From: Saccostrea cucullata
Taxonomy: Eukaryota
Assembly: GCF_032062105.1 (NCBI RefSeq)
Contig: NW_026926689.1
Coordinates: 62,001 to 126,000, forward strand
Direction of reading: 5' to 3'
DNA length: 64,000 nt
In this document: in pieces, positions 8,262 through 46,214 of the stretch
Numbering within the stretch: the first letter of the stretch is position 1
Layout: every line of letters starts with the position of its first letter
Notes under the pieces: model-generated
Seen by the model: the letters and a program-made list of their open reading frames with translations, nothing else
Told to the model about the DNA's origin: nothing
Databases searched by the model: none
Program-made: the position numbers and the translations under genes

Positions 8262-11200
8262 GTCCTTTGTCCATCTGTCCTTTGTCTGTATATTCACATT
8301 TTCATTTTCTTCTCCAGAATTGCTGGGCCAATTTCAAACAAACTTGCCATAAAGCATCCTTGTTAAAGAGGATTCAAGTTTGTTCAAATGAGGGACCTGA
8401 CCCTTTTTCAAAGGAAGATAATTAAGAATTAGTGAAAATTTGGTTGTGTCTTTAAAACAAAAATCTAAATAACAACTGGGCCAAGAAAGTTGAAACTTAT
8501 ATGAAACTTTATTTACATAGTGTAGATTCAAGTTGTTCATTTCATGAGCAAAAAAAATTTTTTAAAAATATTCCTCTCAAGAGGACCACAATGGGCCACA
8601 ATGGGGGATAAAAGTTTTTACATAGGAATATATGGGAGAAAATCTACAAGAATCCTCTCACTAGAACAGAAAAAAGCCATGTTAAGTCTTATTGAAAATA
8701 AAATATTCTCACTTACTGTAATTTTAAATTTGGTCAAATCATGACCCCCTGGGGTAGGATGGGCCACAATGCACTATCAGAATTAAATATATGGATTTAT
8801 TGGGACAAAAGTAAATCTTTTTCATATATTTTTATGTAAGAACAATAAAGCTATCTTTAGTCTCATCGATATTGAAATCAAAGTATATAGAAGAAAATCT
8901 GCTGATGAAGAACAGCAGGGCCATTTTAACTAAGGTGAGTATTGTGGCCCATGGGCCTCATTTTGTGTCTTCATAAAAAGTATATAAATTTTCTAAGACA
9001 CTGACACTTGGACATTGACTTCTCAGATCTTACATAAGCAGTCCCTTCTGTGATTTGTTCCATCAAGTCCTCAGCTCTCTGTCAATTAGCTAATAGAGGT
9101 TTTCCTTTCTCCTTGAAATGCTGTGATGCAAATAATGGTAGAGGTTCATATGGTACTCAGAAAACTTCTTAGGAATGACATTGAACTGTGTTTTAATTAG
9201 CCTAGGATGACTCTGCAGGGGAGAGTCCAAAGACAGCAATGTACTGTCACTGAACTGCGTATTGATTGGGAAGTCTGCTGTGAAATCATAAGGAATACTG
9301 TTCTATGTTTAATACAGACTTTTAAAAGGTGACAATGTGCGTCTTACATTTACGTCACACACAGAACATTTTAACAGTGTCTCAGAATTTACCTTTCTTG
9401 CAAGAATACAAGTTTTAGCAAAATTGAGTAAATTTCAGAAATTTTACTACATTTAGTAAAATATTGTTCTGATGATCAAAATGTTTAGCTTTATGCAAAA
9501 CATGAAAGGTCCAAGCTAACATTAGTAATGCTCTACATAACATTTACATACTTGTTAATTTCAGCAGTTGTCCAAATTTTTTGTCAAGATTATAATTAAA
9601 AAGAATACGAAACTGTGAAAACAGAATGTAAAATTTTACGTTGGAAAGACCGGGTTGTAGAAATCTGGTACTACAGAATTCACCTGTTTTATTCTACTGA
9701 GAAGGACTTGTGACAGTTCTATATTAACAATATAGGGAGTGAATTTGTGACAAGAATTAATCTCTGTCAGTAAAAATAAAAAATATTTTTTGGAGCAGTT
9801 ATTTGTATAACAGTTAGATGGTTATTGGAAAACACTGGAGGGACAATAAATGGTTGTATGTAGAGATTGTCCTTAAACTTGTAGATCTAAGAGTTCTTGA
9901 AAAACTTCTACCTTTCAATTTATATCTTTTTACTTTTTAGCTTGAATACTGTTCATTATCTCTACATATTTCATGCTGATGTTATATTTACAGACCTGGA
10001 CCAGAAGCAGATTCCCACGATACTGCTGCTGTATGCCTATGACTGTGTGGCCCACGAGAAGGTTGTGTCGGCCCTGGCAGGCTTCCTCATTGACACCTGT
10101 AATTGTAACGTACACCTGGACATATTCGAGGACCAGATTATCCACGAGCGGGGACTAGATGATTGGCTGGTAGATAGGCTCCAGGAAGCCGATTTCATCA
10201 TAGTGTTATGTTCTGTGGGAGCTAGACTGAGGTGCACAAAGAAACGTGTCCGGTTTAAGTGTGATCCGTACCGCACCATACCCGATTATTTTGCAGTGGC
10301 TGTTGACTATGTGGCAGAGAAAATGAGAGTGGAGAGAATGAAAGGTCTGCCCATGTCCCGCTTCATTGTAGCCTACATGGATTATTCTTACAGTAGTGAC
10401 ATACCCCATCAGATTGAAATGGGGACAAAGTTTCACTTGATGAATGATATCACCAAACTTTTCTGTCATGTTCATGGTATGAATAGCACAGACAATAGCA
10501 AGTTTGGAACCTTGCACCCATCCATGATTGATGAGTATTATGAAAGCTCAGAAAATGGGCTTGAGCTTCAGGTTGCTATTGAATCTGCCAAAGAGTTCTT
10601 TAAGTGCAATCCTAATTGGGTGGAGGACAGTATGGAAGTTCTACCTCCACCCAGTACCAAGTCAAAATCGCGTCCGGTGAGGAAGAGGTCCCTGGAGCCC
10701 TTATTGGGGGAGCCTCCAGCTGACCCCCGAGTGGTGGATACTAAAGTCGACGTTCACAGACAAAACTTCTCCTCCCCTCAGCCGAGTGAACAAGATCAAA
10801 TTTTCTCTTCACCTAAAACATTGTCCAGGCAATCAGATTCATTCAAAATGAAGAATCGCTATTCTGCAGACATTGAGACAATTCCCTGTATCTTATGTGG
10901 GCAGGTGGGCCATTACAGTGATAACTGCACCTGTAAAGGGAGGGAACAGAGAAAAAATGCACATGATAACTTAAATGACGAGGAGGACGGTGAATTTTTT
11001 TCTGCTCGAGTCAAGAGTCGATCAATGCCCACAATGTGTAGTACAAGTCTTCATAGCTCCCAAACAGTATTTCAGGTGGATGTCCACAAGGAATGGACAA
11101 TGAATGAGGGTCAGATGTCAGATGAAGGCGAATCTCAGGAATATGAGTCCAGTCGTGACCTTGATGACCTTGAGCGCGACCTTCAGTCCATTATTTCACC

Positions 11201-33261: not shown

Positions 33262-34907
33262 AGCTACAACAAACAATAAGTTTAAAACCATCACAGTGAA
33301 CAATTTATATCCGCATTTCTTTCTTTCTTTATTTATTCATTTATTTTAAATTATTATTTTTTATTTTGTTTTTGCATGTTTCTTTTGATTTTTTGGTCTG
33401 GAATTTTCTTTAATGGTTTTCTTTTGTTTTGTCGTTGAGAGAGATATTGTCTCAAAAATTTAACTCATTAAGGGAGGGGTTTTGGGGCAAGCAACCCCCC
33501 GTTGGCTTTGCTAAAAAGAGAGAAAGAAGAGAGTCCCCTTTTTGTTGTGTTTATTAACTATAGAAAATGTTCAGAGAAAGGCTAATGTAGTAATATATGA
33601 AGAAAGTTGGTTGTGAAAACATAATAGAACTTGACCTCCCCCTCATTTTTACAAAGTAGGATTTTCGGGTAAAAAGATTTATTTCCTTTCTTTGAGAAAA
33701 ACTTTCAGGTATTAATCCATATTTTTTCCCAGGCCCCAACTTTAAAAAACGGAATCACATCCCATTAAGTTGTTTACAATAAATTATGTAAACGTATGTT
33801 ATATTTCAAACACTTTTTCTCCTCACCAGGGCCCTCCCTCTTCAGTACCCCCTTTCTAGATTCTAGATCCACGCCTGTAATTAATTTGTTGAAAAGGAAA
33901 TTACAAAACTCATAATGCCTTAATTGGTACATACTTGGGGCGTCACGAGAAAAGACTTACTAGGAGTAGACTTACTACCCCCTTTTTTCTATTCAGAGAT
34001 ATAAGAGCTGACTGAGATTAGCTACTTTCAAAATTGTCTTTATAGAATTTATAGTATTCCGAAGGAATTCCTAAATTACAGATAGCAAAGGTCCAAAATA
34101 TTTTACAAAAGCGAACCGGGGCTAAGCCCCCTCCTACTTTTTTTGTAAAGATAGACGTATTGAGGCGTAGGTTTAGCCCCCCCCCCCCCCTTCAACAGGT
34201 CAAAAGGTAATGGTGTTGGCGTTTTAAAAAATGGTATTGAAAGAAGCTCGGGAAATGCTTAACTGTGGACATGCAGAAACTTAACTCCACTCCAGCATGC
34301 CCATTTGGTGGGATACACCAAGTGCTGTTCTTAATTTAGAAGTACACGTTCATGTATATTCAAGTATCAATTAAAACAATGAAGAGAGTGAGCCAAAGAA
34401 TTAAAAGAATTTAACAATTTTAGCAATATTTTTCCTCGATTAAAATTTTTATTCTCACCGATTCTTCCATTATGCATCTATCTGAAGAGCACTATATATG
34501 TAATTCTTATAATAGAAATATTTCGGATAATTTTTTTTTTTTTAGATAAGATTTTATTGATCTTTCGTGAACCCTGTGACATTCGAATCACAGCCGGTTG
34601 TTTTCACTTTTTATTAATGGTATTTTTATTCTTGTAATTGAAATTGATTAGTAGTTTATTCTGGGTACTATACATGTGTGTTTATTATATGAAGGACCTT
34701 CATTTGAATTTTTACTTTTATTACATTAATTTTCTATTACCTACACAGGGAAATACCAGCGATCTATTAAAAGCCCGTATCAAAGGTATGTTCCAGATTC
34801 TATTAATAGCATTATTACAATACTGAAAGGTAAGACGGGATTTCACGACAGTTTCGGTTGTACAAGTGAACAGGTAGATCTGTACAAAGAAAGTGAAGAC
34901 GTCCAAC

Positions 34908-36077
34908 ATGGCATCAACCACGGAATGCTATTTGTTGATTCTTTGGTTATGTCTGGCATTTTGTGGTAAGTATAATTTACTAGTTCCATATTTGCAGTTT
35001 GTATACATCATACTGAGCTGTCATACATATATACATGTACGTATATGTATGTATACAATGTAGTTTCGCTTCAATTCAGTTGAACAAATGGTTAAACATT
35101 AACATAAAATTTAATAAAAGTAGTTTCGCTTTGAACTACGTAGAGGAAACAAATCTTTTAAAATAATTCATACGTGCAATTAAATAAATTTAAGAAAGAA
35201 TTTAGCTTTTCATCATGCAAACATTTACTTAGAGAGATCGATGTGGTGATAAGGATTTTTTTCCGCCACAGACAACCTTAAAAAAAAAGTTGCTTAAGTG
35301 GAGTTGTTATTTAGCTATCAAATAATTTATGTGTTACCCCAAAGTTACTATGTCTAGTATGAGAACGCATGAAAGTTATACTTCAAAAATAGAAAGAAAA
35401 TGCTTATATATGCAAGCACGAAGTATTATTTTTGAAAGAAAAAACTTTGATAAACAGAAAAAAAGAAAGTTATCCAAACTTGAAAATATCCCATTTTCTT
35501 GTGTGTGGTTATGGTGATAGTGGTGGTGTTGTGGGGGGGGGGGGGGGTTAATTCGACTTCTTTTATAACCAAATTTTCTTCATGTATTACTACATTATCC
35601 TTTGATTAATTTGACTATGCTATAACAAAAGTTGGGGGAGGACGGCAGCCTCCCCCCGAATCATACGTGCATGTTATGAAATTAAGAATAAAATCACTGT
35701 AATTATTGCAAGGTTATTCTACATTATTAATGAAGCGCATTTTAATATAGCGGGTCAAGATACTGCCTCGACGACTGAAACTGCCCCCACCCCAGAAATG
35801 TCCCCTCCCGACCTCCTGCTGCCCATCGTCGTCCCTGTGGCGGTGACAGTGCTGTGTACAGTCATCATTATTGTCGTCATCATCATCTACCTCCGTAAAT
35901 GTCATCATACAGGGGGAGACAGAGTCTCTGATGGTAAGAGCGCTACGTCATAAAACAGATCTTCAATGTTCCAGATTGTTTATTTTGAAAAATACACAGT
36001 TCATCAGGAAAAATAAACTGATAATGTCATGGTTTTAATTCTTGAAGATTTTATTTAAATCTCTCTCTCTCTCCCAC

Positions 36078-36115
<38 letters not shown>

Positions 36116-39100
36116 AGAGAGATTGTATTATACACATAATAAGTAAAATTAAATTGTATTTTTAGCGGAGACAGGCAAAAAGACGGACAAAAAGACAGAC
36201 AAACCCAGCCGTTTTGAGATGGGACTCCTGAGCACGGCTTCCACAGATCGAGGTAGAGTACAGTAATACACGCTGGTCCTCAGGGATGATCTGTCAGATA
36301 GACCGACCTACCCAATAACTCGTAAACAACACATAAAACATCACAACCTAATGTAACAAGATAATGGAAAATTTAATGTATTTTCTTGATTTTATCATGA
36401 CCTTTGTCATTGTATTTATTATGTCTAATGTCTTGGTTGGGGGGGGGGGGTTACCTTCATATTGTATTCTATAAATCAGTGCATCGCGTACATGTATAAT
36501 GATATTGTCAGTAATATTCCCCGAACGCATCCTATGTTATGTTAATATAAACAGCTTTTAATAACTATTTTTAAATTTACAGAAGCAGAGTCTGTCCTGA
36601 ATGGAGGTAATTAAAACCGTTTAATATTACTAGTATCTATCATAAACACACACTATTCTTTCTTTCTATGAATACCGTGATGATTGATTTCTATTCTCAA
36701 TACTAGTATACATACAACTCACCTGTGTAAAGTGGAAGTTATGTGAATGAATTTTCCTTTATTAGCAAAAGAACAACTGAGAGAGATTAAAAGTCTTGAG
36801 AAAAACCTGGCCCTTTCTGTAAAAGGTATGCAACATGTGTATGGATCTGACACAAACTCTGAATTCTTCATTCTATTTTTCCTCCACTTACAAAAGAATG
36901 ACAAGTAGCTAGCTAATGCAGCATTAGAATAAAACCACACAATTGTGCATTATTTGTGACAATATAAAGTTCATACGTAATTTATACATAGAAACACATG
37001 TCATTACAAAAAATCTCTCTTTTTTAATAAAACCAATTTTTTAAAGATATTATATGTAAATTATTCAATTTCATTACAAAAATGTTTCAATTACTCTCTT
37101 TTAATTGTTTTTTTTCTCATTTAGAATTCAAGAGTCTGATGTGGCATGGTAAGATATGTAACCAATTTTATATTAGTACAACAGCATACTTATACATGTA
37201 TACAATGTACATAAGTATTTTATTGCTACATAATAAATAAAAAAAAGCAACATGTCCACGTGTCTAATTTGATATTCACAGATACTTTTTGGTTTTTGTT
37301 TTCTAGCCAACTCAGTTTTGAAGCTAATAGGTAAGCCTATTTAAAGTTTCAGTATAAATGCATTTTTATAATTGTTTGTTTTGGGGTTTTTGAAAAAACT
37401 TTTTTTTTCTAATTGTAATTTTACTAATTGCACACAGATGAGGGAATTGATGAAGAGAGTGAACCTAAAACCCTGAAAGATGAACTGTTTGAAGAAGTGA
37501 ACAAGAGAGGTGAGATCAATCATTGATTGTACAGTTATATTTATACACTGATTATAACAAGAGACCTAACAATGTTATATCTCTTTACATTTATAATCTT
37601 GTTATATACAGTGGCTAAAGATCCCAATGATAAACCAGACGAAGAAGAAGAGGAGTCAAAGAAAAGGAGGATTGAAAGTGTCAGAGAAAAACAAAACAGA
37701 CTGTTTACAGGTATGTTACAAGTAGGGGACAGTCAAGCTATATTGCAGGTACTTGACCAGTACTGGCCAAACTATTAATAATTAAGTACCTGACAAACAC
37801 TGGACAGACTGTTTACAGATTCATGACTAGTATTGGACAGCCAGTTTAAAGGTAAATGACTAACAACAGACAGACTGTATAGGTATGTGGCTATCAATAG
37901 ACACTGACTGTTTATAGGTACCTAACAATTACTGGACAGACAGTTTACAGGTACCTGACTATTACTGGACAGACTGTTTACAGGTACCTGATTATTACCG
38001 GACAGAGAGTTTACAGGTACCTGACTATTATTGGACAGACGGTTTACAGGTACCTGACTATTATTGGACAGACAGTTTACAGATACCTGACTATTATTGG
38101 ACAGACAGTTTACAGGTACCTGACTATTACTGGACAGACAGTTTACAGATACCTGACTATTATTGGACAGACAGTTTACAGGTACCTGACTATTACTGGA
38201 CATACAGTTTACAGGTACCTGACTATTACTGGACAGACAGTTTACAGGTACCTGACTATTATTGGACAGACAGTTTACAGGTACCTGACTATTATTAGAT
38301 AGACAGTTTACAGATACCTGACTATTATTGGACAGACAGTTTACAGGTACCTGACTATTACTGGAAAGACAGTTTACAGATACCTGACTATTATTGGACA
38401 GACAGTTTACAGGTACCTGACTATTATTGGACAGACAGTTTACAGATACCTGACTATTATTGGACAGACAGTTTACAGATACCTGACTATTATTGGACAG
38501 ACAGTTTACAGGTACCTGACTATAATTGGACAGACAAATTACAGGTACCTGATCATTACCGGACAGACAGTTTACAGGTACCTGGCTATTATTGGACAGA
38601 CATACAGGTACCTGACTATTATTAGACAAACAGTTTACAGGTACCTGACTATTATTGGACAGACAGTTATCAGGTACCTGACTATTACTGGACAGACAGT
38701 TTACAGGTACCTGACTATTATTGGACAGACAGTTTACAGATACCTGACTATTATTGGACAGACAGTTTACAGATACCTGACTATTATTGGACAGACAGTT
38801 TACAGATACCTGACTATTATTGGACAGACAGTTTACAGGTACCTGACTATAATTGGACAGACAGATTACAGGTACCTGATCATTACCGGACAGACAATTT
38901 ACTGGTACCTGGCTATTATTGGACAGACATACAGGTACCTGACTATTATTAGACAAACAGTTTACAGGTACCTGACTATTATTGGACAGACAGTTATCAG
39001 GTACCTGATTATTACCGGACAGACAGTTTACAGGTACCTGACTATTATTGGACAGACAGTTTACAGATACCTGACTATTATTGGACAGACAGTTTACATG

Positions 39101-42100
39101 TACCTGACTATTATTAGATAGACAGTTTACAGATACCTGACTTTTATTGAACAGACAGTTTACAGGTACCTGATTATTACTGGACAGACAGTTTACAGAT
39201 ACCTGACTATTATTAGACAGACAGTTTACAGATACCTGACTTTTATTGGACATACAGTTTACAGGTACCTGACTATTACTGGACAGACTGTTTACAGGTA
39301 CCTGACTATTATTGGACAGACAGTTTACAGATACCTATTATTGGACAGACAGTTTACAGATACCTGACTATTATTGGACAGACAGTTTACAGGTACCTGA
39401 CTATTATTGGACACACAGTTTACAGATACCTGACTTTTATTGGACAGACTGTTTACAGGTTCTTTACAAATGCTATAGGCACTTGAAAGCCTATTTAGAA
39501 ATACTTGACTAGTACTCAACAGAGTTTTTTCAGGAACATGACAATTACTGGACAGCATGTATACAACCATGACTTATTCTAGACAGACTGTTTACAGGTT
39601 TACAGGTACTTGACTAACACTGGACAGACATTATACAAGTACATGGCTATTACTGGACAGACTGTTTACAGACACCTGACTATTACTGGACAGTCAGGTT
39701 GCATGTTCTTGACTGGTACTTTTACTAGACAGACTGTTTACAGGTACCTGATTATTATTAGATGGACAGTTTACAGATACCTGACTATTACTGGACAGTC
39801 AGGTTACATGTTCTTGACTGGTACTTATACTAGACAGACAGTAAGACTGTTTACAACCATGGCTCATTAAGAGACTGTTTACAAGGTACTTGATTAGTAT
39901 GGAGCTGACAGTTTACAGATGGAACAGGCACATTGAGTGTTGTTGTCCCTGCAGAATAATTTTTGAAATTAATGAACATTTTTTTTATCATTGATAAATC
40001 TAATCAACAAAGAAGAGCATATTACGAAATAACAGGAAGTGAACTTTTTCCAAATTAATAATACTTTCATGTTTAATTTTGATGTAAGGTATGAAAAAGG
40101 TCATGTTAATACATTGTAATACAGTATCATTTTGAACAACCATAATGCATAGTCACATTTTATTTCATTTTATTTTTTTTGCAGAAACGCACAAAGTTCT
40201 CAATGAAGGTAATTTTCTGTTTATAGATTTACTAGAAATCTTATCATTCATATGATTTATATGTTGTATATAAAATGCCTATAATTGTATAATACATTTA
40301 AGTACGCATTTTCAGTAAAATGGAACAAAAATAGGCAAAAATCTCTCTTCTCAATAGAAATTGCTTAATAAAGTGACATTTTTATGCTTTTTTATATACA
40401 TATGTATATAAGTTGTATACATCTCAAGAACTAACTTAACTATTTTTTTTTCATATTTACCCTACGTAATGGTGTTTCTAAGAACTGAAAATTTAATGAA
40501 ATTAATAGTATGCTTATTCTATTTTGAATGATTTGAAGATATTGTGTTTATTGCTGATAACTTAGTTGATCTGACAATTCATGTGTCATAAGTTCTCTTT
40601 TTTTAAAATTAGGCAAAAAATATATCAAGGAAGCAAACCAGAAAGACATAGAAATCAGAAACTTCACGAAAGGTAACTGCATGGTGTATGTTTAGTTCTT
40701 CTTAAATTGTCCCTCACTAAGAAAAGCAAAACAAATAAATTGTACAAAGAATCTCTGTTTTTTTAACACAGTTTAAAAATATCAATTGTACACTAATTTT
40801 ATAGAATGAATTGTAACTGAGAACATTTCCTGTTATTTTTTTTAGATGCAAAGAAAGCTTTAACCCAAGGTTGGTAGAAAATTATATTTAACCAAAAATT
40901 ATAAATATCACAAGAGCATTACAATCTGAATGTGTTTAACACTTGTCTTATTTCCCGTTTCAGTGAAGGACCGTGTTCGAGACATGAGGAAGTCCACAGG
41001 TATTAATTGTTACTGATTCAATGTAACCTCAATATTTTGAACCGAAAGAAATCGTTGTATCTAAGCTTTCTTCTGTTGTTTTACCCCATATTTTACGGTC
41101 TTACACGGAAATAAACGCGTATATAAGGTCAAAATCTGCAAATACCTTCAGTAATAAATCATTCAGCAGTTTATGCAACATGACATGACAACTTGTATGA
41201 CAATATTTTTTTTAAATGAAATAGTTATCTTTTTATTGTTTTGTTCAATGCTTCAATGTTAATGTTGTGTTGATTTAGGATATTTATTTATCAATTTTTA
41301 ATCTACATGCAGTACAACTGAGCAATTTTCATGATTCGAACCTCAGCTGGTTACAAATTTTGGAATTAATGAAACGTTTCAAGAGAAGTTGTAGAAATTC
41401 TTGGCTTTCATGATTGTTTACTAACGTCGAATACCGTTTGATATCCACAGCGAAAATTTCGGTGGTAAATATACTGAACGTGACACAGGCCCTGTCACAC
41501 CAAGCTGCGTCCACACAGAGTCATTGTAAAAATTTTTAATCGCCGTGGAATCACAGGGAAATTGCACAAATTTCTGTAAAATTTTCACAATGTGAAGATG
41601 TCACGGCGTCCCTACGGCGACTGACGCGTTTCTACGGCGTTCTCGCGGCGTTCTACTGTGTTCCCACGGAGATCTCTTCGCGATTGACTCCGCTTCCGCG
41701 GAGTTTTCACAACGTGTTAGGAGTTTGCATCTCGTGTTCACGGCGTTCTCACTGCGGTGGCTGCGTTCACAAATACGTTCACAATGGGTTCTTCACCCAT
41801 GGATATATATATATTCATCAGGAGTGTAAAACATTCATAATTAAAGATTCAAGCTACATAATGAAAAGACCTACTTTCATGACAAGAAATATAACTCTTA
41901 ATTAAAAATGATCTATTTGAAAATTTAGTACTAAATTATTAATAGTTTTTTTTTTATTAAAATCCTTTTTTCAATTTTATCGATTCAGATGTGTTGTTTT
42001 ATTTGTATTTTCATTGATTTCATTATGAATGTTAAAAAAATAAACATACTGAAAAGTTGCTACAAATTTTAAATTATTCCACCGAAACACCACTGAAACA

Positions 42101-45067
42101 ACAGAACAAGTCCTGGTGTAATTAATATCTCTTCCCAATTTTATTTTAATGCTCCCAGTGCAACAAATACGTTAGAATTATAGTTGATCAAATATAAGGC
42201 TATTGCTCTTGTTTTGTGAGCTGGCTGACAACGCCGTGAAAGCGCAAATGTGATCGCCAACGGACGCTGTACATGTAGAAACGCCAAGGGAGCGCAATGA
42301 TCGCAGTGACATCTCCGTGTTGTTGTGTAATCGCAGTGGACTCCACGACGTCTCCGTGAGGTCTCCGTGGAAGCGCAGTCTACTATCAATGCGTTCATGC
42401 TGCGATCATGTGCGTCTTCACGGCGTTCATACGGAGCTCCCACTGCGTTGCTGGAGATCTCACCGCGCTGCTACGGCGATCATATTACGCTTCTATTGCG
42501 TTCTTTTCAGACCGCGATATCACACGGCGCTTACATTAATAGTGCATGCCCAAAGTGATCGCGGTCCCCTGGCGTTCTAGGAGACCCTAGCACCCCTACT
42601 AATGTTATTGTGATTTAAATTCAAGACACGTGGTTTAGTTTGATCTATTTAAAGGTTATAGGGTAGAACCGGTTTTATAAATAAAATTGGCAGTAAACAT
42701 GATATTGCTATAGCCTGTTTCTTTTGAAAACATGTCCTGTAATAAATGTTTCCAGACCTTTCTGAAAGACTTTCATGATTTTCAACAGAAAAAGGGTGGC
42801 TAAAGGAGGGGGTGTTAAAATAACAATATATCTTATACTTTTCGGCGAAAATTAGAGCTCACTAGTGACCGATTCGCTGGTAAAAAATGTGCATTATCAT
42901 CTACACTGAGTGTAGACCTTTGTTTGCCTTTTATGGCTATTGTTATAAATGCGCACAGAGGATCTTACCACGAGAACTGACCAATCGTTGAATGAATATC
43001 AACGTTTACGCCAAATACATGTTTACATTTTACTTCGAACGCGTAGTTCAGGTTAATCTACGATCATGTTAATGGACTGCAAAATAAAAAAGAAATGTTC
43101 TTACGAAAAAAATACAAAGATAAGAAACTTTAAAAGATGTTACGGGTGTTTTTAATTTGTTGTTAAATGGAAAAATGTTTAATAAAGTGTAGTTTGTGTC
43201 TAGTTCAGAACACCAGCGCTTCAAGGGTAAGGAAAACCACAGGTACCAAACTCGCTTGAATATTTGACCCCCTAATATTTATAATATACTAGGGGGTCAA
43301 AAATTCATGCGAGTTTGGTTTCTGTGAGGAAAACGAGCAGCATCTCTTATGCATTTAAATGGACGAAACTTTGTTTACGTTCGTGATCACGTGTTCGGCT
43401 AGGGAACTCACCTGGCAATTGTATTCACCGATAGTACAACAAAGGAATATTAATACAGACGAAATCACTTTATTTGCAGTATGACTTTCAGAAACCTTGA
43501 CTTCCCCCGTTTATTTAATAAATGAATTGTTTGTCATTATGAGCATGAAAATAATATTTGTAAAAATTGCTTTTCATTTACCATACGATTTTCCTTTTCT
43601 TCAAGCGTAAAATTCCTGTAGTATTCGTAGTAACCCATAATGCAATACTCATTCAGCTGATTGGTCAGTTAAAATCATGCATGTGCCTCATTTGCTAATC
43701 TGACGCCAAAAAATATAGTCCCGGTTCCCATGCAAAAATATTTGTCCAAAAAGAAATTTTAATTCATAACAGCAGAAAATTGTACCATAGAGAATACTTA
43801 TTTAAGTTTGAATGAATGTAAAAGAGATCGATTGATTGAAGTACATTTCTACAGACATTATCAGCTTATTCTAGGGAGGTGAAAATTGAAACGCACCATA
43901 ACTTTTCTGTTTACAATGCCTCCACGTGCTAGTCACTTCCTATCCACATTTCCGTGAATAATTTACCCTATCTCGCTGAAGTCTCGCTAACTCTCGCCAG
44001 AGACACTGCCAGATCTACTCTGAACTCATCGGGTTTTATAATTTGCAGAACTCCGAAAAATAGAAGGTTCCGAACACATTAGTAGGGGTGCCTAGGACCG
44101 CGTTCAGTGGAGATCTCGCCGCGTTGTCACGGCGCTGTAGAAGACTCTACTGCGATCACCCCGGCGTTTTGCATTTTTTATGGACGCTGTGTGATCGCAG
44201 TGAGGACGCAGTCCCCCTGTGACTGGGGTTTTACACAAAATTCCTATCCATCTGCACAAAAAAGCAACATTTTAAAAGAACATATCGAATATCATTCAGC
44301 ATCTTCACAAGCCAAGGATTTCTAAGCTACTCTGATAATGAGGAGATCGAGTAGTATATCAGAAACCTTGGCTTGCGGAGATGATCATTCAGTGAAGGGC
44401 AATATTTAAGCATCGCTTCTAATTATCCAATGCTATAACACTAGGTATCTGATATGTTCAGGTTACTGTTGAAATACATACAAACCCCTCCCCTTTGTTT
44501 AATAATTGATAGTTATGCTAGTATATTGCATGAAACACATGAAAGACCTTCATATCCCGTGCACCATTCCTGAACACATTTAGCATACGAGCAAGTAAAT
44601 AGAATGGACCCGTTTTGTGGCGAGGACTTGTATTTTAACTAACAAGCAAGTAGAGTAGAAAACGCAGGACGAGGCGCGATACAACATAGCAACCAAAACA
44701 TACTAGTACACAACAATAAATTAATACATGTATATTGTTTAAAGAGACATTAATAAAACTAATGATAAATGAATTGAAGTTTATTATTCATCTATGATTT
44801 TTAGATAAAAAGAAGGACGTGAAACACGGAAAACTGGGAACTGGGTATGTATGATATAAAACGGTCTAAGTAACTGTATGATATAAAACGGTCTAAGTAA
44901 CTGTATGATATAAAACGGTCTAAGTAACTGCTATATAGTATGATATAAAACGGTCTTAGAAGTAACTGCTATACATGTGTGTATTTCTGAAGAAGAGTAT
45001 GTTCTTGGTAACTGATTTGGGGGTCTTTTCCAGAGAAGAGAAGAAGCCTTTACTGGAGAAAAAGTGA
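34908..45067 (+). CDS. Uncharacterised 262-aa type I membrane protein encoded by 14 exons including five 24-nt microexons
   Basis: Exons 34908-34965 (signal peptide MASTTECYLLILWLCLAFC), 35751-35933 (T/P-rich stub plus TM), 36166-36252, 36583-36606, 37125-37148, 37307-37330, 37438-37509, 37612-37710, 40185-40208, 40613-40672, 40846-40869, 40964-40999, 44805-44844, 45034-45067. All have AG/GT borders and join into a 789-nt stop-free frame ending EEKKPLLEKK*. Confidence 0.8.
36060..36112 (+). repeat. (CT)n microsatellite
   Basis: Direct reading. Confidence 0.95.
37696..39920 (+). repeat. 33-bp minisatellite (about 50 copies plus degenerate flanks) containing the exon-8 3' end and donor
   Basis: Unit GGACAGACAGTTTACAG|GTACCTGACTATTATT versus the exon end ACAGACTGTTTACAG|GTATG at 37696-37715. 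A higher-order block at ~38521 repeats at ~38848. Confidence 0.93.
41488..44229. mobile_element. Degenerate non-autonomous TIR element (PIF/Harbinger-like ends) with a nested insertion
   Basis: GGCCCTGTCACAC..CTGCGTCCACAC versus GTGAGGACGCAG..TGTGACTGGGG. GC-rich subterminal CACGGCG repeats on both sides. TSD not resolved. Confidence 0.55.
42591..44090. mobile_element. Non-autonomous Transib-like element, 5-bp TSD CCTAG
   Basis: 15-bp TIR CACCCCTACTAATGT/ACATTAGTAGGGGTG. CCTAG at 42586-42590 and 44091-44095. Confidence 0.75.
44849..44975 (+). repeat. 27-bp x4 tandem repeat starting 4 nt inside intron 13
   Basis: GTATGATATAAAACGGTCTAAGTAACT repeated. Confidence 0.9.
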
Positions 45068-45502: not shown

Positions 45503-45663
45503 NNNNNNNNNNNNNNNNNNNNNNNNNNNNNNNNNNNNNNNNNNNNNNNNNNNNNNNNNNNNNNNNNNNNNNNNNNNNNNNNNNNNNNNNNNNNNNNNNN
45601 NNNNNNNNNNNNNNNNNNNNNNNNNNNNNNNNNNNNNNNNNNNNNNNNNNNNNNNNNNNNNNN
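45503..45663. other. Assembly gap (161 N)
   Basis: Run of N. Confidence 1.
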
Positions 45664-46214
45664 TGAAATAAAAATAACTTTTTATAATATTCTTGCGTTT
45701 CCATGATTATACGTTATATGTGTCATTTTGAATTTTCGCAAATAATCCAATGTACATGTCGTACTATGCTTTTCTACATGTATTTATCATTGCACAGCGT
45801 ATGTCTAGCAGTGAGGAACTGCACTTTGATGTGAATATATGTATATGTATTGAAAAGACCATAATCGTTGGCATTTGTGTTATGTTTGAAGGTTGCGTCT
45901 TCAAAAATCGCAGTATCTTGGTTGCAAGAAAATGTATTGAAGAGGTTGTATTTTTAAAGCTTTTTGAAATAATTGCCTTTCATTGTATATGCTATACATG
46001 TATATATATAGTTTTTAAATTAATAAAGAATTATGACTGCTTGGCCATGTTGTTTGTTGATTGTTTCAGGTTTATCCATTGTGTTTGTATTTAAAAAGAC
46101 TACTTATCTTTATTTTGTGCTATGTATTAATTAAAACGCGCGGCCATCTTTAAAAATATACAGTACTTGCTTGTCCTCTCCCAATGTAGAATAAAAATAT
46201 TGGGTCGGGTCGTA

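Follow-up and report, generated by a model that had tools for sequence, protein, structure and literature searches.

A run of very short exons, each of which can be dropped without loss of the reading frame, raises the question of whether it serves to vary a protein or is a fixed feature of the gene. The question is posed here by LOC134272425, which lies in a 64,000-nucleotide stretch of the genome of the oyster Saccostrea cucullata (assembly GCF_032062105.1, contig NW_026926689.1, positions 62,001 to 126,000 of the forward strand), referred to below as the window. An earlier note, made from the letters of this DNA, had described an unannotated micro-exon gene for a membrane protein with a minute ectodomain, and had proposed that its cytoplasmic tail is diversified by combinatorial splicing. 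LOC134272425 is an expressed, catalogued but uncharacterised gene for a lineage-restricted single-pass membrane protein, a known locus whose exon layout is unusual but fixed. Its micro-exon tail is under strong purifying selection and is the most conserved part of the protein, the reverse of a diversified tail. The best explanation overall is probably that of a single-copy 15-exon oyster gene whose main product, 282 amino acids (aa) long with all micro-exons included, is a type I membrane protein; the structural part of this explanation, a real and annotated gene with a dominant form that includes every exon, is held with great confidence.

Gene model and annotation

The coding sequence (CDS), rebuilt from the window, lies on the forward strand and begins with the ATG at 34908; its 15 coding exons give a product of 282 aa (Table 1). 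The same exon chain was reproduced by an independent splice mapper that threads the protein through the DNA on AG/GT borders alone. All exons from 35751 to 40999 are phase 1-1, preceded by a pyrimidine tract and AG and followed by GT(A/G/T), and a G precedes all 14 donors. The tail is thus encoded by eleven symmetric exons (twelve counting exon 2) of 24-99 nt, six of which are no longer than 36 nt. Because the final G of the donor consensus, an ordinary exon-side base, is combined with phase 1, the junction codons are GNN, and the prediction that any skipping pattern keeps the frame and creates no stop holds for exons 2-13. The ten symmetric tail exons first listed are all present, with AG/GT borders, phase 1-1 and a final G, but the 60-nt exon at 36766-36825 had been overlooked, and with it the product grows from the 262 aa first proposed to 282.

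How much weight can such a pattern bear? In a crude scan of the rest of the AT-rich window, candidates of the form AG, open phase-1 frame and G-GT turned up by chance 0.3-0.7 times per kb, so that the exon pattern alone proves little and outside evidence is needed. That evidence consists of RNA junctions and of an identical exon structure shared by four further oysters, which together place the exon chain beyond chance.

RefSeq XP_062610648.1 (P0012), "uncharacterized protein LOC134272425 isoform X1" of S. cucullata, matches the product of the 15-exon model in every letter. The locus was therefore already annotated with every micro-exon, and the description of it as unannotated does not stand. 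The RefSeq entry was reached with exon 2 (window 35753-35932) as query, which matched a transcript-derived 274-aa protein (P0001) at 60% identity; P0001 in turn retrieved eight proteins, six named ones from oysters and two unnamed Logan transcript clusters, and a cluster look-up led on to XP_062610648.1. Only one locus for the gene is present in the 1.17-Gb S. cucullata assembly.

Table 1. Coding exons of LOC134272425 and the minisatellite of intron 9, in window coordinates; TM, transmembrane; joints are given as donor/acceptor positions.
Feature	Coordinates	Strand	Content	Evidence
Exon 1, CDS part, 58 nt	34908-34965	+	start codon, hydrophobic region (h-region) of signal peptide	joint 34965/35751 in RNA runs X1 and X3
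Exon 2, 183 nt, phase 1-1	35751-35933	+	cleavage region (AG/QD), ectodomain, TM helix, juxtamembrane YLRKCHHTGGDRVSD	joint 35933/36166 in 4/4 runs
Exon 3, 87 nt, phase 1-1	36166-36252	+	basic linker, poorly conserved	RNA (joint 36252/36583), codon alignment
Exon 4, 24 nt	36583-36606	+	heptad module 1 begins	RNA joints on both sides, orthologues
Exon 5, 60 nt, phase 1-1	36766-36825	+	encodes KEQLREIKSLEKNLALSVK	joints 36606/36766 and 36825/37125 in 4/4 runs; RefSeq X1; all orthologues
Exon 6, 24 nt	37125-37148	+		RNA, orthologues
Exon 7, 24 nt	37307-37330	+	heptad module 1 ends	diverged copy in RNA contigs (4/4 runs), orthologues
Exon 8, 72 nt	37438-37509	+	short acidic helix; EGIDEESEPKTLKDELFEEVNKR	RNA (joint 37509/37612), orthologues
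Exon 9, 99 nt	37612-37710	+	DEEEEES acidic run, then long second helix begins	RNA
Minisatellite, 33 bp x 61	37786-39819	+	intron 9, not coding	repeat scan
Exon 10, 24 nt	40185-40208	+	heptad module 2 begins	contig loose end behind 37710
Exon 11, 60 nt	40613-40672	+		contig loose end after exon 10
Exon 12, 24 nt	40846-40869	+		RefSeq X1, orthologues
Exon 13, 36 nt	40964-40999	+	module 2 ends; last symmetric exon	RefSeq X1, orthologues
Exon 14, 40 nt, phase 1 to 2	44805-44844	+	sole non-symmetric internal exon	orthologues, isoform models
Exon 15, CDS part, 34 nt with stop	45034-45067	+	EEKKPLLEKK and stop; acidic dileucine motif	sequence, orthologues

Transcripts and constraint on the tail

The RNA data come from one study with four runs, whose contigs were placed on 34850-37780 and end before the tandem repeat of intron 9. 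They show GT..AG joints at the positions given in Table 1, most of them in four of four runs, extend upstream of exon 1 to at least 34884 in the 5' untranslated region (UTR), and join exons 1 to 11 at the modelled borders, exon 5 included. Spliced reads over these junctions had been set as the check on the gene, and the contig joints supply it. Between 37148 and 37436 the contigs of all four runs carry 22 letters in which the 24-nt exon at 37307 recurs in slightly diverged form. A loose end follows 37710: it carries the 24-nt exon at 40185, enters the 60-nt exon at 40613 and continues for 230-255 letters, where the remaining exons require 218; its length, beyond the first 30 letters that were read, fits full inclusion of the exons after 37710. 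Word depth is about 75-170 in exonic and 2-5 in intronic sequence. The contigs are 90-99% like the window and so derive from another individual or population, which makes them independent of the assembly. No exon-skipping joint was present in the contigs of the four runs over 34850-37780, where rare variants would drop out.

Threading of the proteins through fetched DNA allowed the orthologous loci of four other species to be compared with the window (Table 2). Phases are identical and a G stands before every donor in all five species, and the penultimate exon, 37-46 nt long, is everywhere 1 mod 3.

Table 2. Lengths (nt) of the coding exons, in order, at the orthologous loci of five oyster species.
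Species	Exon lengths
S. cucullata	58, 183, 87, 24, 60, 24, 24, 72, 99, 24, 60, 24, 36, 40, 34
S. echinata	58, 180, 90, 24, 60, 24, 24, 72, 99, 24, 60, 24, 36, 46, 37
O. edulis	46, 174, 75, 24, 60, 24, 24, 72, 99, 24, 60, 24, 36, 37, 28
C. virginica	52, 183, 72, 24, 60, 24, 24, 72, 102, 24, 60, 24, 30, 40, 28
M. gigas	52, 183, 84, 24, 60, 24, 24, 72, 102, 24, 60, 24, 36, 40, 28

Constraint is very unevenly spread along the protein. Nei-Gojobori estimates of omega on the codon alignment are 0.094 (S. cucullata against S. echinata) and 0.049 (against O. edulis) for the tail micro-exons, residues 110-258, and 0.64 and 0.41 in the same two comparisons for the signal peptide and ectodomain. The tail is 77-95% identical among oyster genera and the ectodomain barely alignable. 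In runs X1 and X3 the ectodomain part of exon 2 has an in-frame insertion of TCC at window position 35800, with several substitutions, and this polymorphism agrees with a fast-evolving ectodomain.

Isoform models at these loci are automatic (Gnomon) predictions, and all X1 models include every exon, as do all the Logan transcript open reading frames (ORFs) listed for two M. gigas-type clusters. The X2 model of S. cucullata (P0007) is reproduced exactly by moving the donor of exon 9 by +4 nt (to 37714), omitting exon 10 and placing the acceptor of exon 11 20 nt upstream (at 40593), changes that keep the protein length and swap eight residues. The only recurrent alternative event among the models is skipping of the penultimate exon, whose omission (37 and 40 nt, respectively) exactly reproduces O. 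edulis X3 and C. virginica X2; the frame shifts, and a short unrelated peptide replaces the dileucine end. Other 3' variants or truncations occur in O. edulis X2, in C. angulata and in one M. gigas UniProt entry. Among the transcripts and isoform models compared, no in-frame cassette skip of a symmetric exon was found.

The 2012 M. gigas model K1Q5R3 (P0011) lacks exons 2, 3, 7 and 11 and, because the exon phases are symmetric, keeps the frame until it reaches an aberrant C-terminus. It is most simply explained by an older predictor missing small exons, which gives some ground to the expectation that gene predictors would lose exons here; RefSeq X1 has them all. Logan ORFs of 178-182 aa were considered as isoforms without the TM helix and rejected: in the 182-aa case (P0016) the start codon was miscalled, the full ORF being open upstream in its four contigs, and the 178-aa ORF (P0023) directly follows that of ribosomal protein L27A on one contig, which is probably chimeric. 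The M. gigas gene model (L018:3001-54376) has a 45-kb intron before the 36-nt exon, and directly downstream lies a second gene (51837-54376) with a 278-aa product, two RefSeq accessions sharing one sequence. The arrangement suggests either a tandem duplicate or an assembly duplication whose two copies a single model spans.

The encoded protein and its possible mechanism

The signal peptide, short ectodomain, TM helix and long cytoplasmic tail are as the earlier note described them, judged from the sequence and from Kyte-Doolittle hydropathy. The N-terminal hydrophobic stretch scores 1.65 over 19 residues. Behind it come an ectodomain of about 19 aa, rich in threonine, proline and serine, on which mucin-type O-glycosylation may be expected, and a TM helix at about residues 43-67 (maximum 3.2, at 45-67) that is followed by basic residues and kept in all full-length orthologues. 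A type I topology is suggested by the small-residue motif before QD, the variable h-region and the basic residues after the helix. The juxtamembrane box YLR(C/K)CH..GGDK is conserved, with two cysteines in most species that are candidate palmitoylation sites. The tail, residues 69-282, is highly charged (52 K+R and 46 D+E among 214 residues).

Within the tail are two heptad modules, each of which begins with exons of 24, 60 and 24 nt. Module 1 (residues 110-154, exons 24-60-24-24) has an a/d heptad occupancy of 0.92, a value reached by 1 of 2000 shuffles, and module 2 (residues 211-256, exons 24-60-24-36) one of 0.69, reached by 7 of 2000; for residues 189-258 none of 2000 shuffles matched the heptad pattern. 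The a/d hydrophobic pattern of a coiled coil thus extends across several heptads, and the two modules share a heptad register relative to their exon starts. The acidic run between them is DEEEEES here and poly-D in Magallana and Crassostrea; the stretches VAKDP and RRIES, which also lie there, are invariant. AlphaFold2 places helices at 107-154, 164-178 and 189-258, at low confidence and with no packing. At the other end, the proposed fit of EEKKPLLEKK to the sorting pattern [DE]xxxL[LI] is strengthened by conservation of a GEExKPLL C-terminus in five oyster species. EEKKPLL (residues 273-279) has acidic residues at -4 and -5 and proline at -1, and lies in a C-terminal segment with no predicted helix and a predicted local distance difference test (pLDDT) below 50; it thus combines an acidic residue at -4 from the leucine pair with a cytosolic, accessible position.

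These features would suit a membrane-anchored scaffold with a sorting signal, a mechanism that is advanced tentatively from the sequence. The charged, helical cytoplasmic tail of about 200 aa would form a coiled coil that binds a conserved partner, and clathrin adaptors would bind the acidic dileucine and sort the protein between the cell surface or trans-Golgi network and endosomal compartments. For oysters of two other genera the models include transcripts that skip the penultimate exon, and such skipping could yield a form without the sorting signal. Motifs of the form [DE]xxxL[LI] bind adaptor protein complexes. That the modules arose by exon-cassette duplication is a reasonable hypothesis, though less likely than not. 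The uniform phase-1 layout is a fixed feature of gene structure, not a diversification device, and may be left over from such a duplication.

Several observations weigh against parts of this picture. AlphaFold2 gave a pLDDT of 50 for the whole protein and 60 for the tail alone, with predicted template modelling scores of 0.19 and 0.27, respectively, and no confident packing. For the duplication, the modules align without gaps (xxxxVLNxxK...) with a score matched by 32 of 2000 shuffles, which is weak support, and hhalign of module 1 against module 2 gave a probability of 4%, with no profile support. On the side of splicing, the RNA contigs show the dominant form and minor skipped isoforms could escape them; exon 10 is omitted in RefSeq X2, with compensating alternative splice sites; and the form lacking exon 14 is modelled in other oyster genera and not observed in S. 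cucullata. Finally, a literature search by locus names and by "micro-exon" with "oyster" found nothing of relevance and no paper that names these loci.

The alternative that survives best places the splicing that matters for function at the 3' end, in a conserved switch with two states, by which inclusion of the 40-nt exon would give the EExKPLL end and its omission a short end without the signal, with a changed membrane address. In S. cucullata skipping of exon 14 would shift the frame with loss of the ExxxLL end, and the shifted frame would read EKRRSLYWRKSD and stop. The constant 1 mod 3 length of the penultimate exon in five species speaks for such a switch, as do the two isoform models that correspond exactly to its omission and a shifted frame that in four of the five species stops in the last exon after at most about 12 codons. 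Those models, however, are Gnomon predictions, and none is listed for either Saccostrea species or for M. gigas; in S. echinata a stop comes much later in the shifted frame, and the shifted peptides are not conserved. The RNA contigs were placed upstream of the 3' end of the gene. On balance a regulated switch is unlikely, though it has some footing in the models.

A second alternative concerns topology: were the N-terminal stretch, which is strongly hydrophobic, to stay uncleaved, the protein would be a two-pass hairpin with an outer loop of about 20 aa rather than type I. This is improbable, since AGQD, ASQD or AAQD is kept right after a freely varying h-region in full-length orthologues, the usual picture of a cleaved signal, and the h-region has only 6-8 residues before it. 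In either case the tail would face the cytoplasm.

Combinatorial skipping of symmetric cassettes to give diversified tails, as in schistosome micro-exon genes, was the reading from which the question arose, and it fares worse. In its favor, any skipping pattern across exons 2-13 keeps the frame, X2 lacks exon 10, K1Q5R3 lacks four exons while remaining in frame until its aberrant C-terminus, and rare isoforms would be invisible in contig data. Yet no skipping joint appeared in the four RNA runs over 34850-37780, the listed Logan ORFs and all X1 models carry every exon, tail omega is low (0.049-0.094), and the tail exon lengths are reported invariant across five species. Moreover, loss of pieces of 8 or 20 aa would break the heptad register, X2 holds its length through compensating sites and not by a cassette skip, and K1Q5R3 is an early automatic prediction. 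Combinatorial diversification of the tail is accordingly very improbable. That the protein is a very distant member of a small type I family such as TMEM154 can be set aside as the least probable of all, since the Pfam match behind it (PF15102, E=0.0028 over the TM region of P0001) reaches at best 17.9 bits against a gathering threshold of 30.3, covers the TM helix alone and appears at E<0.1 in only two of seven members, the window's own protein not among them, and since the ESM Atlas look-alikes (TMEM154, TMIE, SMAGP and opalin) are generic small type I membrane proteins at 0.77-0.81, scores of a range (below 0.9) that shuffled proteins reach about one-third of the time.

Each 33-bp unit of the intron-9 minisatellite copies the last ~17 nt of exon 9 together with its donor (GTTTACAG/GTA), and the unit was found nowhere else in the S. 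cucullata genome. About 24 units keep TTTACAG/GTA, which could be usable as both acceptor and donor, and 17 have GATA instead. S. echinata has an orthologous array of 45 copies (L017:5635-7156), and O. edulis a 47-bp unit (41 nt of exon end and 6 nt of intron) at two places in the same intron (L009:8821-8920 and 10046-10196); in C. virginica and M. gigas the intron is short and has no array. It is conceivable, though improbable, that all these features belong together, in an oyster-specific membrane-anchored coiled-coil adaptor built by duplication of a 24-60-24-nt phase-1 cassette, with splicing regulated at two places. One would be a conserved frame-shifting exon that toggles the dileucine signal, the other exon 9, whose 3' end and donor have been amplified into the intronic array (as many as 61 decoy or recursive splice sites in Saccostrea, matched by a lesser array in Ostrea). 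The array could control whether the micro-exons behind it are used, and could permit in-frame skipped forms too rare to show in contig data.

Other sequence features lie towards the 3' end of the locus. A perfect tandem repeat of three 27-bp units (100% identity, window 44848-44930) occupies part of the last intron directly after the donor of exon 14, and a run of N (an assembly gap or masked sequence, 45514-45664) begins about 450 nt past the stop codon, probably within the 3' UTR. In intron 13, the block at 41440-44250 has a GC content of about 0.38, against 0.31-0.33 in the flanks, with repeated motifs resembling CACGGCG / CTACGGCG and a hairpin of 41 nt (43238-43326). Nested transposon debris is the probable nature of this block, which would explain the 3.8-kb length of the intron.

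Taxonomic range and comparison with other systems

Three word-indexed searches of a 5.8-billion-protein collection, with the whole protein, a seven-sequence profile and the tail region alone, matched only oyster-type proteins (Ostreidae). Named homologues come from S. cucullata, S. echinata, O. edulis, C. virginica and M. gigas, to which the cluster look-up added C. angulata; C. virginica has an orthologue and a paralogue that is 51% identical, and the unnamed Logan transcript clusters fall beside M. gigas and C. angulata. Because a word-indexed search can miss distant relatives, restriction to oysters is a current finding and not proof. Pfam searches with one member and then with all seven gave nothing near a cut-off, and a PDB sequence search gave nothing above noise. 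The suggestion of a lineage-specific protein of no known family thus agrees with all of these searches.

The nearest embedding neighbors in the ESM Atlas, TMEM154, SMAGP, opalin and TMIE, resemble the oyster protein in having a short ectodomain rich in threonine, serine and proline, one TM helix and a longer tail. All are chordate families with no significant sequence relationship to it, and none was matched via the two-module tail.

The likeness to schistosome micro-exon genes (MEGs) holds for exon size and symmetry and fails for secretion, splice variation and fast evolution. MEGs are defined by short symmetric exons and secreted products (bioRxiv 10.1101/2023.06.21.545858). LOC134272425 shares with them strings of very short symmetric exons that have longer ones at both ends, a signal peptide, a narrow taxonomic range and an absence of recognisable domains; its CDS consists mostly of short symmetric exons, although exon 2 (183 nt) and the exons of 87 and 99 nt exceed the size typical of MEGs. 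Unlike the MEG products of that definition, its product is anchored in the membrane, with the micro-exons encoding the cytoplasmic side. It differs further in that its exons are constitutive in the data examined, in contigs that hide rare forms, that its tail is under strong purifying selection, and that it is single-copy and not part of a multigene family.

Two other kinds of system offer partial parallels. Acidic dileucine signals of type I proteins are known from the tail of tyrosinase (EEKQPLL, which EEKKPLL resembles), from CD3-gamma and from LIMP-II. The oyster motif likewise would lie in a cytoplasmic C-terminal segment that is predicted to be unstructured, and it is conserved in five species, but it is known from sequence and belongs to a common pattern that can occur without function. 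Repetitive exons produced by exon duplication include the 54-nt exons of collagen, the PEVK exons of titin and the micro-exons of troponin T. LOC134272425 resembles these genes in its uniform intron phase, in the repetition of 24-60-24 and in the shared heptad register from exon starts; it differs in having only two cassettes, with weak evidence of duplication, and whereas troponin T and PEVK exons are alternatively spliced, its cassettes are not seen to be.

For the annotation of such genes, LOC134272425 would be a tidy model of how aligners and gene predictors handle 24-nt exons, several of which were lost from the 2012 M. gigas model. A symmetric micro-exon run is by itself not evidence of combinatorial splicing, and here it encodes the part of the protein that has changed least. 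That this tail is so well conserved across oyster genera, in a well-expressed protein for which homologues were found in oysters alone, implies that it has a specific partner in the cytoplasm, and the gene could serve the study of a possible switch in splicing by which a sorting signal is lost.

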